Assembly: GCA_054661495.1 (NCBI GenBank)
Contig: BAAFSQ010000233.1
Span: forward strand, 1-15,574
Source: Zygophlyctis sp. KS116
Taxonomy: Eukaryota; Fungi; Chytridiomycota
Length of the DNA stretch: 15,574 bases
Direction: 5' to 3'
The position numbers were made by a program, and so were the translations under genes. The notes beneath the pieces are model-generated. The model ran no database searches and was not told the DNA's origin. It worked only from the letters and a program-made list of their open reading frames with translations. This document shows positions 1,356 through 15,493 of this stretch, in pieces. Every line of letters begins with the position of its first letter. The stretch's first letter is position 1.

Positions 1356-2081
1356 TCAATCTCTTTTTCTCCTTGATTCTCTATTAAACTGTGAGTGATA
1401 GTATCCCTGCTCACTTTCATGCAATTTGTAATCTGTACTTTTCCGTGAATCCATACTTGATCCTGTCAATAGTTTTTTTGATTTTTCAGACTCTAACTTT
1501 TCACGCTCAATCCTTTTCCTTCTGAGCTCTTCAATACTACTACTTTTAGTACTACTACTTTGAACAGTACTATCTTGAGTACTTTTAGAAGAATTATAAA
1601 GTTTTTCCTTTGAAATAACTTGATTAGACTCTTGTCTGATTTTCCTTAGAGGATCTTGTTTAAATTTAATAACTTGATCCTTTTCCTTATTCATCCTACT
1701 AGAGTAAGATTTTGGTAATTCCTTTATAGAGTACTGATCAGATTTATTAAATTCCTTTACATCTGATTTTGAGTACCAAGGATCTGATTTCTCTCCACTT
1801 TTAGTTTCTCCTAGTTTCATAATCCAAGGATCATTTTTAATTTCATCCTTTTTAGACAAACTTGAACTTGACTCTTGAACTGGAAATAAAGTGAATTTTT
1901 CCTCTTTTCCTTTAGAAATTTGGAGTAAATTGAGTCTTTCTTCTCTTTCACTTTTTAATTTCTTTTCCAATTTTAATTCCTGCTGTTTTTTAGCATCTTC
2001 TTCGTCTTTAAGAACTCTGAGTCTATTATCTCTCTTGTATACATGCCATGATTTATGATGAAGAATGTTTAATTTTCCCAT
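1356..2081 (-). CDS. LENG1: LENG1/Saf4-like spliceosome-associated protein (CIR N-terminal domain), 241 aa, intronless
   Basis: N-terminal MGKLNILHHKSWHVYKRDNRLRVLKDEE; internal DPWY, QDPL and SIEELRRKRIERE; C-terminal YHSQFN. All are typical of the LENG1 family. Confidence 0.85.
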   Translation of the reverse strand: MGKLNILHHKSWHVYKRDNRLRVLKDEEDAKKQQELKLEKKLKSEREERLNLLQISKGKEEKFTLFPVQESSSSLSKKDEIKNDPWIMKLGETKSGEKSDPWYSKSDVKEFNKSDQYSIKELPKSYSSRMNKEKDQVIKFKQDPLRKIRQESNQVISKEKLYNSSKSTQDSTVQSSSTKSSSIEELRRKRIEREKLESEKSKKLLTGSSMDSRKSTDYKLHESEQGYYHSQFNRESRRKRD

Positions 2082-2171: not shown

Positions 2172-2239
2172 TAGTTTACTGGAACTGGAGTTTCCCGATT
2201 CCTTTAACGAGAAATAGGAATAGTCCAGAGTTCAATCCC
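2172..2239 (+). promoter_or_regulatory. RNA polymerase III type-2 promoter (A box and B box) in the leader upstream of the RNase P-like RNA
   Basis: A box TAGTTTACTGG at 2172-2182 fits TRGYNNANNNG. B box GTTCAATCC at 2230-2238 fits GWTCRANNC. The spacing is tRNA-like. Confidence 0.55.
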
Positions 2240-2286: not shown

Positions 2287-2485
2287 AAGAGCGTGGAAAG
2301 TGTACATATCAGCCCTTGTTGGCTGGACAGGCTCCCAAAAAGCTATTAACCTCTAAAGGGGTAGTATTAGTTTAGGCTAGTACTCATGTCACCAGAAATA
2401 AACTTTGCTGAAATAGGCATGAGCTGTAACACTTTAGTGCAATATGTACACGTACTTTCGAGTGCGACTTGATTGGGATGCTCTT
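2287..2485 (+). ncRNA. RPR1: Nuclear RNase P RNA-like ncRNA, minimal (~200 nt) and divergent
   Basis: Helices occur in RNase P order: P1 2287-2292/2480-2485; P2 GTGTACATAT 2300-2309/2442-2451; P3 2310-2325; P4 TCCCAA 2333-2338/TTGGGA 2473-2478 (pseudoknot); P7 2341-2344/2422-2425; P8 2349-2362; P9 2363-2384; P10/11 2385-2390/2416-2421; P19 UUCG hairpin 2452-2465. Conserved regions: CR-II AGAAA 2394-2398, CR-III TGAAA 2409-2413, CR-IV AGTGCAAT 2436-2443, CR-V-like ACTTGATTGGGATGC 2467-2481. CR-I is atypical. Confidence 0.68.
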
Positions 2486-2493
2486 CTATTCTC

Positions 2494-2503
2494 TTTTTTT
2501 TTT
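2494..2503 (+). terminator. Pol III oligo-T terminator
   Basis: T10 run 8 nt after the P1 3' strand. Confidence 0.6.
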
Positions 2504-2654: not shown

Positions 2655-4757
2655 ATGGTTTCGTCAGAGAGTTTACATCATCTTTTGGGATTGTCAAGGC
2701 AGGAATTAATGCAAGAGCCAATAGAAAAAATAGAAAAATTCTTTACAAATTCAAACTTGAATATAAAATCTATAAAATTATTGGAAATCTTAAAGGAAAA
2801 TTCAAAGGATTTCTCTGGGATTTTGCAGAAATTTGTTCAAGAGGCTCTCAAGGATGAGAATATTGAGATTTTAAGTAAATTGTTTCAAAGGTTTCCTAAA
2901 AAAATGAAAAATTATTCTGCATTGGCAAAAAAGGTTTTACAACAGCATTATTTAATTGGGTTTAAGCAGGGTTCTAGTGTCAAGCATATTGTAGATTTGG
3001 ATTTACAAGTTGAAATTTCAATCTCTTCTTCAACTACCATCCTTACAGCTTGCCCTAAAACTAGCCTCCAGGGGTGCTTGGATAATATTGTTTTTCTCAT
3101 TCAGTCTTGTTTGATATGCGTTCAAGGTATTTTCAGGCTTAATTCTCAAAAATTTAGATTACAAGATTCATGCATCCTGTGATTATCAACAGTATTTAGT
3201 TAGAGAATGTATGGATGATGATTACAAGGTACAATTGGAGAATTACTTGAAATTATTAAACTTCTACTGTTTTAAAGTCATTCCAGAAATGACAAGGTAT
3301 TTATTTACAATGAAATTTAACTAAAAGAAATTCAGCGTACAAGAATGTAATGATTGATATTAATCAATTTTTTTCAATTGCTTTTCAGGTTTTTCAACTG
3401 TCAAGGTTCAATAGTGTAATTTTACAAATTGTATCCTTAAAATTTAGAGTTCAGATCCTCAGAGGGATCCGCAAGATTTTGAATTGCTTTTAGGAAGCCT
3501 AGAAGGATTATATTTAGCACTCATAAATGTCTTGAAGGGGTTGGTGATACGTCTTCAAAATGCATTGGCTGGTTTCTCTCAGGATATTTTTCTTATAATT
3601 GAAAAAGGGTTAGAAAGAGGATCAATTGGTGTTAAATTAGAGATGTACGAATTAATGGCGACATGTTTTGAATATATTTCAAGTTTTTCAAATTTAGATT
3701 TTTCACGGCTAATGCAAATCATTCAAATAGATTGGGATTCTAAACTGGAAAAGCAAAATCAGAATCTGGTTTCCGAAAAAAATCATTCTTCTAAAAAACG
3801 CAAAGTTACTATTGAAAAGATTCAAAGTCCATATGATGGTCTACAGCAGCATCTGTCTATTAGAAAGCAGTTGATTAATGGTATTTTTTATAATTAAAAT
3901 TTATAGTCTTATCACAAATGGTAAAGTATGACTCATCACTATACGAAAATCACGATTTAATCGCAAATGCAATTCAAGATTTGCTGCAAATGAGGATTAA
4001 TCATTTGGAGAATGATTATGAGGACTATCACGTTAAACTTTTAAAGTTTGTATGTGAATTATTGATTTCAAACTATCCAAAGCATATATTTCCTTTGGTT
4101 TTACACAGTTTGCAAAAATCATATTACTCTGGAAGTTTAGAAATCAAGATTGCTAGTACTAATGGTCTTAGAATTTGTGAAGCAATTGTTCACAGCCATT
4201 CAAAAGCTCCTGCATCTTTTGATCTGCCTATTAAGAATGATACTGCTAGGAATCCTATAGACTGCGAAAAGTCTTCAAATATAGTGGATTTAGGAACGAA
4301 AACCGCTGAATTTAAGCAAATGAATACCGTGAAAGATCTCGGTTTTGTAGAGGCTAATCACAAAACCGTCGAAAATGCTGGTTTATTCCGCAAAATTCCA
4401 AACGATTCGACCGAAAGTGGGCTGATTGTTAAAGAAAGCATTAACTCTGTCATAAATGACGATAAATCAAGTTCAGGGAAGCAGGAAGAGAAGGAGACCG
4501 GATATATAAGCTTGGTGGTAAATGAAGAGGAAGCGGATGAGAAAATTATCGCTGAGGTGAATAATGATCCAGTCGTAACTTCAATTTTCAATTCATCAGA
4601 GCCAAAGTTTGAAGATGCCAGAATAGTCAATAATGATCAAGAAAATTCAGGAATGGATAAATTAGTAGATGATGGAGATGAGTCAGATGATAGCGACTTG
4701 TCTGCAGCCTTTAGTATTCCTGAAATAAATATAGACTCATCTGATAACGATGATTAA
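2655..4757 (+). CDS. RIX1: RIX1/PELP1-like pre-rRNA processing protein, ~660 aa
   Basis: Introns 3127-3157, 3297-3327, 3416-3447 and 3881-3906 join three ORF-track pieces into 661 codons. The protein has a helical N-region, LRICEAIVHSH (compare Rix1 LEALIHPR), a disordered linker and an acidic tail ending IPEINIDSSDNDD. Confidence 0.65.
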
Positions 4758-7741: not shown

Positions 7742-8401
7742 ATGGCTACAAAGCAGGCAATCATTGACAAGATGCTGCAAAGGAAAAATGACATTCTAAA
7801 CAATCTTCAGAGCCTCAAAGAAGAAATTCAACAGTTTGATGTTGAGCATGATCGGACAAGTACCAAGGCCAATCAACAAACACAGATAGATAAGACATTA
7901 TGGATCGAAAAAGAGAATCTACTAAAGGATAATGATAATCTTAAAATTCAAAATCAAATATTAATACATAAAATACAACAGGGGGAAACTATTGCTGCTG
8001 AAAATACAATTCTAGTAACTCAATTAGATGCGTCTAGATCAGAACTGGCACAAAAATCTTTAGAACTCTTACAATCAAACAAACGAAATTTAGAACTTGA
8101 ATCAACTATTATCGGACTAAAAGCAGAGATTTCTAAACTACTAAAGCAGAGTCCAGTCATGTCTAGCGGATCTGTATCGACGAAAAAAGTAGATAATTCT
8201 GAAAGAATTGCAATGATCAATCAACAACAGTCTCTAATCTCAGAGATAGAAAGAATGAAGGCAGAATACGACAAGTATAAAGATCTTATCGCGTCTATCG
8301 AGACTGTTGCTGCAACAGGAAAGATCTGTCTTGTAAGTTCAAGAGGATTAAAAGTCACTACAATGCTTGAATTAGCTCAAGAAATTAAAAATTTCAAATA
8401 A
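7742..8401 (+). CDS. Hypothetical coiled-coil protein, 219 aa
   Basis: Long ATG-initiated ORF rich in L/Q/E/K/N with heptad pattern, filling the gap between two convincing genes. A possible 22-nt intron at 8333-8354 could alter the C-terminus. Confidence 0.7.
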   Translation: MATKQAIIDKMLQRKNDILNNLQSLKEEIQQFDVEHDRTSTKANQQTQIDKTLWIEKENLLKDNDNLKIQNQILIHKIQQGETIAAENTILVTQLDASRSELAQKSLELLQSNKRNLELESTIIGLKAEISKLLKQSPVMSSGSVSTKKVDNSERIAMINQQQSLISEIERMKAEYDKYKDLIASIETVAATGKICLVSSRGLKVTTMLELAQEIKNFK

Positions 8402-8426
8402 TGCATTAGGAAAGTTGTATTAATGA

Positions 8427-8766
8427 TCATTTACGGCTATTCTTTAAAAGATAAATTCCTAGGAATTCAGTTGGGTTTGGAGGCCTTTTAGTTTAGAAAA
8501 TATAAATTACCGTTCTTTAGATATTAATTTCAAGCCTTCGATCAGGATTGGTACAACAGTTTCATCAAGATATGATCGCAGAGGAAGTCCCTGTAAATTA
8601 GATTTAGAAAATGTTGTTGCAGCTTCCTTATCAGCGGCAATCATTTCCTAAATGAATTAATATTTCGAATTAATCATACTTCTAAGCTCTTTGTTAGACC
8701 ATATCCTTCTAATCCTGATGGAAAACTATAATCTGTTGGCTCAGATGATGCTTCTATGCTATTCAT
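8427..8766 (-). CDS. DPY30: Dpy-30 motif protein (COMPASS subunit Sdc1/DPY30), 93 aa; not in the ORF track
   Basis: Introns 8648-8679 (32 nt) and 8485-8510 (26 nt) give 94 codons containing [42 protein letters not shown]. An alternative start at 8791 is possible (see findings). Confidence 0.92.
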
Positions 8767-14795: not shown

Positions 14796-15006
14796 TTTTA
14801 CTCTTGATAACAATGACAAATCACGCTGAAAATGTCGGACGTCACTGATCTGTTTGCGCAAGTGATTTCAGTTTAATCATTTCACAAATTCTTATAATTC
14901 TTTTAGTAAAATAAAAGAGATTATTTGAAAGAACTAATAGACATGACTAATTTAAATTTAGAAATAGGCCACCACACTAAATAATAAAAATATACCAAAA
15001 TGATAA

Positions 15007-15039
15007 GGGGCTCTCCGGGAATCGAACCCGGGACCTGTC
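15007..15039 (-). pseudogene. 3' half of a tRNA-Pro gene (positions ~41-73)
   Basis: GAC AGGTC CCGGG TTCGATT CCCGG AGAGCCC C; 31 of 33 nt identical to 15422-15454. No 5' half is adjacent. Confidence 0.9.
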
Positions 15040-15165
15040 TTAAATGGGACTTTAAATGGGTCCTTAAGGGGTCCTTAATGGGACTTTAAATGGGACTTTA
15101 AATGGGTCCTTAAGGGGTCCTTAATGGGACTTTAAATGGGTCCTTAAGGGGTCCTTAAGGGGTCC
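15040..15165 (+). repeat. G-rich minisatellite, 11 units of 11-12 nt with a 46-nt higher-order period
   Basis: Units A=TTAAATGGGACT, B=TTAAATGGGTCC, C=TTAAGGGGTCC, D=TTAATGGGACT, in the order ABCD ABCD BCC. Confidence 0.95.
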
Positions 15166-15421: not shown

Positions 15422-15493
15422 GGGGCTCTCGGGGAATCGAACCCCGGACCTGTCACACCCTAAGCGACCATTATACCACTAAACCAAGAGCCG
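15422..15493 (-). tRNA. tRNA-Pro (anticodon AGG), intronless
   Basis: CGGCTCT TG GTTT AGTGGT ATAAT G GTCGC TT AGG GT GTGAC AGGTC CGGGG TTCGATT CCCCG AGAGCCC C. T7 terminator on the minus strand at 15410-15416. Confidence 0.95.

Follow-up and report, generated by a model that had tools for sequence, protein, structure and literature searches.

Nuclear RNase P RNAs (RF00009; yeast RPR1, human H1/RPPH1) usually comprise 250-550 nt (PMC2996960). Of the 21 RNase P nucleotides conserved universally, 11 lie in the P4 helix (PMC4919922), and the metal ligands in yeast are A91, U92, U93, G343 and A344, of which U93 is the universal U (PMC6565675). The exchange U52C in Thermotoga costs about 13-fold, and the authors of that study stress the role of backbone ligands (PMC3488217). 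Yeast RNase P requires Pop1, Pop5 and Rpp1, and cleavage without Pop6/Pop7 is correct but weaker (PMC6061874). Very small P3 helices and S-domains and a short Pop1 are found in microsporidia and Giardia, in which Rpp20 and Rpp25 were not found (PMC1636426). The authors of Bcheck reported deviant CR-I motifs in Coprinus and Laccaria and suspected that divergent fungal genes had been missed (PMC2996960).

The window, that is the whole stretch of 15,574 nucleotides that was analysed, is contig C233 of a 12.7-Mb eukaryotic assembly of 1175 contigs. It contains a gene for a small RNA that shares with nuclear RNase P RNA the helix order, CR-II, CR-III and CR-IV, the distal part of P4, a U at the universal position, the AC..GA letters of CR-V and the cognate proteins, and that differs from it by changed bases on the junction side of P4, by a changed base in place of the A after P4 and by a score below the Rfam cut-off. 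As its CR-I/CR-V letters are not canonical and its score lies below the cut-off, the RNA is filed as a variant of nuclear RNase P RNA, homologous to it. With catalysis attributed from the family, this is very probably the only nuclear RNase P RNA, and a working one, in a chytrid-like freshwater fungus with a small genome and in its relatives.

Structure of a reduced RNase P-type RNA

The features of the locus are listed in Table 1. CM R1 matches 2287-2496 at 257 bits. RF00009 was the top family in three separate scans with 20.2, 20.4 and 26.2 bits, all of them partial matches. At the locus it is the best family at 2341-2467 (20.2 bits, E 7e-4), no other family scores better, and the alignment spans P7 to P19 including CR-II, CR-III and CR-IV and ends short of CR-I and CR-V; one homologue scores 26.2 bits (E 3e-6). 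The gathering cut-off of RF00009 is 28 bits, and at this level Rfam gives no match at the locus. The single strand folds only slightly better than shuffled sequences (z -1.8), and the structure therefore rests on comparison.

Table 1. Features of the RNase P-type RNA locus and its surroundings (window coordinates)
Feature	Position	Strand	Basis
LENG1/Cir_N-like divergent neighbour gene, not part of the RNA	1356..2081	-	homologues with PF10197
A-box-like Pol III element, 115 nt upstream of the RNA	2172..2182	+	pattern match; chance ~0.02 per 30 nt
B-box-like Pol III element in putative 5' leader	2228..2238	+	sole strict B-box on the + strand of the window
Predicted mature RNase P-type RNA, 209 nt	2287..2495	+	ends deduced from P1; CM R1, covariation, metatranscriptome contigs
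P1 5' strand, pairs with 2484-2495	2287..2298	+	3 pairs with two-sided change
P2 5' strand, pairs with 2444-2451	2300..2307	+	8 bp, invariant in five lineages
P3, 5-bp hairpin without Pop6/Pop7 internal loop	2310..2325	+	1 two-sided, 2 one-sided changes
CR-I variant and P4 5' strand	2325/2326..2338	+	invariant in five lineages; register energies
Distal P4, 5 bp	2334-2338 with 2473-2477	+	intact
S-domain	2341..2425	+	RF00009 alignment
P7	2341-2344/2422-2425	+	
P8	2349-2362	+	1 two-sided change
P9	2363-2384	+	6 two-sided changes
P10/11	2385-2390/2416-2421	+	2 two-sided changes
CR-II, tRNA-elbow T-loop	2391..2398	+	RF00009 consensus match, invariant
CR-III, tRNA-elbow T-loop	2409..2413	+	RF00009 consensus match, invariant
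CR-IV, canonical	2436..2443	+	identical to RF00009 consensus octamer; invariant
P19 hairpin, UUCG loop	2452..2465	+	1 two-sided, 2 one-sided changes
CR-V variant	2467..2483	+	kept: A2467-C2468, G2471-A2472, G2477; 2478-2483 non-canonical
T-run, Pol III terminator-like	2494..2503	+	T-run of at least 4 after P1 in all five lineages
First ORF of downstream gene	2655..3182	+	syntenic with the RNA in L039/L040, L274, L275

A preliminary description of this DNA had read the RNase P motifs and helix order into about 200 nt, with a 5-bp P3 that lacks the Pop6/Pop7-binding loop and with almost no P12. All motifs are found at these places, and the RF00009 scores and the covariation in five lineages put them beyond chance. 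P3, closed by a loop of 6 nt, is a 5-bp hairpin in four lineages and is longer with a one-sided bulge in L275. A linker of 10 nt between CR-II and CR-III replaces P12; the five-lineage alignment reveals no conserved helix in it, and P12 is thus absent. Compared with the usual nuclear RNase P RNA, the RNA is short and lacks the P3 loop, P12 and P15. Both the small P3 and the missing P12 are known from microsporidia and Giardia (PMC1636426); neither the reduced size nor the lost P3 loop is a novelty. The likeness to this type, which includes the tiny S-domain and the undetected Rpp20/Rpp25, is regarded as convergent. The present RNA belongs to an independent chytrid-like lineage in which Rpp40 is present, and a non-canonical P4 is not described in PMC1636426.

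Homologous lineages and covariation

Homologues were found in four further lineages, and the pairwise identity of the RNAs among the five is 75-96%. L032, which has other neighbour genes, is the one true homologue among 27 matches in JGI metagenomes to a P4-agnostic pattern, in which CR-II, CR-IV and part of CR-V were fixed and CR-I was free and which was limited to a short P12; a few CR-V letters of L032 were thus preset. The other lineages are free of this bias, as L039/L040, L274 and L275 were found by synteny alone via homologues of the downstream protein (94%, 45% and 39% identity, respectively).

On a model of 58 pairs, 14 pairs changed on both sides (distribution in Table 1), and 97.5% of all cells pair. 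None of 500 shuffles scored as high. With related sequences, this outcome cannot be read as a true probability; robustness lies with the two measures based on pair counts. Slid controls were paired to 31-48%, and P2, P4 and P7 are invariant or nearly so across the lineages. The covariation places P1 at 2287-2298 with 2484-2495, which gives the RNA its length of 209 nt, and confirms the nuclear RNase P helix order P1-P2-P3-P4-P7-P8-P9-P10/11-P19. An alternative P1 built with 2480-2485 was dropped, as covariation favours 2484-2495.

Viral and bacterial collections yielded chance matches only. Synteny on the LENG1 side is not kept (L004-L007, L282, L283) and led to no copy in a named chytrid, and no copy of the RNA was found in 20 kb of Globomyces DNA. 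Three metagenome contigs (L014, L018, L035) have a stretch of about 100 conserved nucleotides in common, which is a chance pattern match without any Rfam or model match. The predicted protein P0024 was discarded as a spurious fish repeat protein.

The RNase MRP RNA of the same genome

The genome encodes a separate RNase MRP RNA of 168 nt (G000:C45:10528-10695, corresponding to L001:1501-1668), which scores 37.7 bits, below the Rfam cut-off. It possesses a canonical P4, and its P3 is a plain 13-bp hairpin without internal loop. A second MRP match, L002, was rejected, since it shows only a word resembling the 5' strand of P4. The RNase P-type RNA shares with this MRP RNA (RF00030) the lengths of the core strands, the loop-less P3 and the missing A after P4; in contrast, the MRP RNA has canonical P4 letters and a GARAR loop and lacks CR-II/CR-III. 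The RNase P-type RNA is no MRP RNA itself, as its P8 loop is UAAA instead of GARAR and CR-II/III are present.

The re-lettered P4 helix

On the junction side of P4, CR-I and CR-V depart from the canonical letters at 2326-2332 and 2478-2483. No other part of the molecule is conserved as well as this altered core: all 26 positions of 2326-2338 and 2472-2484 are invariant in the five lineages versus 105 of 183 elsewhere (p 3.6e-6), and the 14 re-lettered positions alone give p 1e-3. G2471-A2472, the equivalents of yeast G343-A344, are invariant as well. By its position, U2333 is the equivalent of the universal U and is kept at its place.

In the preliminary description, a GGC bulge was thought to replace the catalytic U. 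However, U2333 immediately precedes the C paired to the conserved CR-V residue G2477, which is the place of the universal U; the supposed loss arose because the first of two adjacent U residues in yeast, instead of the second, was taken for the bulge. Seven bases separate P3 from U2333 and six separate distal P4 from P1, and both distances are equal in the MRP RNA of the same genome. Thus, bases were exchanged without net insertion. The conserved A after P4 is indeed lost, as had been noted before; the MRP RNA carries a G at this site, and the lineage therefore tolerates the absence of the A.

When aligned position by position to the MRP RNA, the three P4 pairs on the junction side would be C.A, G-U and G.G, so that the pairing must slip by two nucleotides. 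A slip of the 5' strand forms C2328-G2480 and A2329-U2479, which the preliminary description had taken for a compensated change from A-U to C-G; this register has calculated energies of -6.4 kcal/mol with U2333 paired, -3.7 with U2333 free and -7.3 with two more pairs. A slip of the 3' strand forms G2330-U2482, G2331-C2481 and C2332-G2480 and reaches -11.4 kcal/mol with a U2333-A2478 pair and U2479 bulged, or -9.2 kcal/mol with U2333 free. The RNAalifold consensus chooses the latter slip. The proposed compensation thus belongs to one of several registers, whose rival is 5 kcal/mol more stable, and since the region is invariant in all homologues, covariation cannot support any of them.

At the level of the active site, a variant of the working-enzyme reading takes the most stable register literally. 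P4 would then be a helix of 9 bp (2330-2338 with 2473-2482). U2333 would form a pair with A2478, and the only bulged U would be found on the other strand, at U2479, where it would take over or reshape the metal site. It is consistent with the energies, with the choice of RNAalifold and with the invariance of every base involved. However, U2333 still occupies the universal position, the same register with U2333 unpaired retains -9.2 kcal/mol, comparative support for the register is absent, and a single base would be left between P4 and P1. The lowest-energy register is, moreover, not obligatory for a protein-bound eukaryotic P4. Such a new geometry is therefore rather improbable; if real, an essential eukaryotic RNase P would work with a rebuilt P4, shifted by two bases and with its universal U paired, a geometry present in no known RNase P or MRP.

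The P4 re-lettering looks new: no literature on such a variant or on a chytrid RNase P RNA was found in a search whose coverage did not include the main inventories of CR-I/CR-V exceptions. The closest cases are the hypothetical RNAs of Coprinus cinereus and Laccaria bicolor and the 3-nt P4 insertion of Otolemur, in which a deviation in the 5' strand of P4 likewise defeats standard searches (PMC2996960). Those deviations consist of U insertions in the GAA motif and of point changes, each seen in a single genome, whereas here both P4 strands are re-lettered without net change in length, the letters are fixed in five lineages, and covariation is found elsewhere in the molecule. It is conceivable, though not probable, that chytrid RNase P RNAs normally carry these letters, unnoticed so far in public genomes. 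The deviant motifs and missed fungal genes discussed by the Bcheck authors (PMC2996960) fit this idea; however, the P4-agnostic scan of the JGI metagenomes, confined to RNAs with a short P12, gave this variant only, and no paper describing it was found. A distribution across chytrids would widen the finding and not cancel it.

A clade in which several universal P4 letters are changed, and fixed in their changed form, in the only apparent RNase P RNA represents a natural experiment on the base identities that the two-metal site needs and on how much Pop1/Pop5/Rpp30 can impose, and as the same proteins must serve the canonical P4 of the MRP RNA, a control is built in. With 209 nt and about six protein partners, the enzyme would be a small eukaryotic RNase P for reconstitution. 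The score below the Rfam cut-off also explains how RNase P RNA comes to be 'missing' in some fungal genomes.

A probably single RNase P, its proteins and its substrates

No second RNase P RNA was found in the genome by BLAST, by the structure model (150 of 180 candidates scored) or by the sequence model. The genome scan with RF00009, in which 15 of 598 candidates were scored and which missed the present locus too, also gave no second copy. A canonical CR-IV/CR-V pattern had four matches, all lacking a P4 partner, versus five in the reversed control; a CR-II/III/IV pattern with a longer P12 had one match versus one in the control and no model match; a canonical CR-I plus P8 pattern had no match. 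Weak matches of the R1 and R2 models were discarded, as they lack the CR motifs, and the four R2 matches that were read lie in open frames.

The genome encodes Pop1, Pop4, one Pop5, Rpp30, Rpp40 and Rpr2. The Rpr2 match is closest to yeast RPR2 and not to an MRP subunit, and Pop1 keeps the arginine cluster that contacts P4 in yeast. PRORP was not found in a genome search that had no positive control, in agreement with its absence from fungi (PMC4919922). For Rpp20 and Alba/Rpp25, no match to PF12328 or PF01918 was obtained. Judged from these sequences, both RNAs have lost the Pop6/Pop7 site in P3, in step with the proteins. Among six genes of the L7Ae family, there is no clear Pop3/Rpp38. Pop1 (L037, G000:C28, ~34000-35800), when read without splicing, appears short, as it also is in microsporidia and Giardia, and little sequence precedes its conserved N-terminal motif. 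Another gene (L358:967-1893, minus strand) encodes a protein of 308 amino acids with an L7Ae domain followed by ankyrin-like repeats. A weak second match to the Rpr2 family (E 0.02) at a contig end (L009:1-132, G000:C915) might be a Snm1/RMP24-like fragment or a chance match.

In the approximately 50 tRNA genes, positions 1 and 72 pair and the bases upstream vary, and tRNA-His has no encoded G-1. They are ordinary substrates that need 5' trimming and give no sign of a shifted cut; a coupling of the altered P4 to a shifted cleavage site was rejected at genome level, as the 1:72 pairs are normal. Within the window, a tRNA-Pro(AGG) gene (15422-15493, minus strand), the only AGG copy found, has a C1.C72 mismatch, whereas the other nuclear tRNAs pair at 1:72. 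A copy of its 3' half (85% over 54 nt) follows short tandem repeats at 14986-15160 (minus strand) and may be a tRNA fragment or a SINE-like remnant. The genome has two genes of the Thg1 family, one of them TLP-like, and repair of tRNA 5' ends is therefore possible.

The preliminary description had left two readings, a divergent, reduced RNase P RNA or a re-purposed, non-catalytic paralogue. The first is well supported: the lack of a second RNase P RNA and of PRORP, the presence of RNase P proteins and the separate MRP RNA make a working enzyme the most likely reading. As a paralogue, the RNA would bind tRNA-like elbows, and the formation of tRNA 5' ends would fall to a canonical RNase P RNA that escaped detection, to a protein enzyme or to RNase MRP. 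The altered CR-I/CR-V would agree with this, and as the assembly is in 1175 contigs and the RF00009 scan is weak, a canonical copy could strictly have escaped, a long one also in the scans with the custom models. However, five kinds of search revealed no such copy, PRORP was not found, Rpr2 is present, the tRNA genes need 5' trimming, the metal-ligand positions are kept, and the altered core is the part conserved best. RNase MRP, moreover, has no CR-II/III, and a fit to tRNA is not expected of it (10.1101/2020.03.17.996132). A paralogue is thus very unlikely. What speaks against a working enzyme are the departure of CR-I/CR-V from the consensus at near-universal positions, the Rfam scores of 20-26 versus 28 bits and the best fold, which pairs U2333 with A2478.

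For the working enzyme, the following mechanism can be proposed. RNA polymerase III would transcribe the gene from the A and B boxes in the 5' leader to the T-run, as in yeast RPR1, and the leader would be removed. The 209-nt RNA would assemble with Pop1, Pop4, Pop5, Rpp30, Rpp40 and Rpr2 and with no Pop6/Pop7 (Rpp25/Rpp20) pair. CR-II/CR-III would grip the tRNA elbow, and two Mg2+ ions, presumably bound through O4 of U2333 and through phosphates, both those immediately 5' of this U and those at G2471/A2472, would allow hydrolysis of the pre-tRNA leader at +1. The three base pairs on the junction side of P4 are re-lettered with strand lengths kept. As most metal ligands are backbone oxygens, the site could survive a two-base slip of the pairing, provided that proteins keep U2333 unpaired. 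The loss of only about 13-fold in the U52C exchange likewise suggests that much of the site rests on backbone ligands, so that a helix with exchanged letters could plausibly still work.

Authenticity and expression

A contig from a DNA run of another study covers 2281-2527 with no substitution listed within the RNA and about 20 differences in 2144-2276. In two lake metatranscriptomes, contigs spanning 2301-2473 and 2185-2437 show no difference; such contigs carry no strand, ends or level. The runs containing this DNA come from fresh water. An assembly error, which the preliminary description had considered, or a decaying pseudogene would have nothing in its favour except the odd letters. The same CR-I/CR-V letters in the independent DNA study, in two RNA runs and in four other lineages argue against both, as do flanks that vary around a gene that does not, and the probability of either is negligible.

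In yeast RPR1, a tRNA-like promoter is located in the first 84 nt, the leader (PMC2566860), and the A- and B-box-like elements upstream of the present RNA would lie in a comparable putative 5' leader. A-boxes are also found at -109 in L040 and at -125 in L032, and the upstream DNA of neither aligns with the window. B-boxes are present upstream in L032 and L274, and none was found upstream of the RNA in L040; the B-box of the window has no listed variant inside it in run X4. The RNA contig starting at 2185 would fit a leader-bearing precursor and may equally derive from a neighbouring mRNA or from DNA. The upstream region of L040 (L040:1-150) does not align with 2140-2255 of the window despite an RNA identity of 96%, with the A-box at the same distance.

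Neighbouring genes

The closest named homologue of the LENG1-like protein is found in Globomyces pollinis-pini (35%). Together with the CUA-anticodon tRNA described below and the freshwater origin of the runs, this homologue is the ground on which the organism is taken for a chytrid-like fungus. The downstream ORF has no Pfam match and appears RIX1/PELP1-like by inspection. ORFs at 890-1296 of the window (minus strand) resemble a Crinkler-type N-terminal domain by eye and have no Pfam match. Elsewhere in the assembly (L289/L290, G000:C172, ~7900-8500), a mitochondrial-looking tRNA cluster with a CUA-anticodon tRNA adjoins a frame interrupted by TAG codons (UAG as Leu, a usage shared by some chytrids); a CUA-anticodon tRNA is known from Spizellomyces and relatives (PMC5304391).
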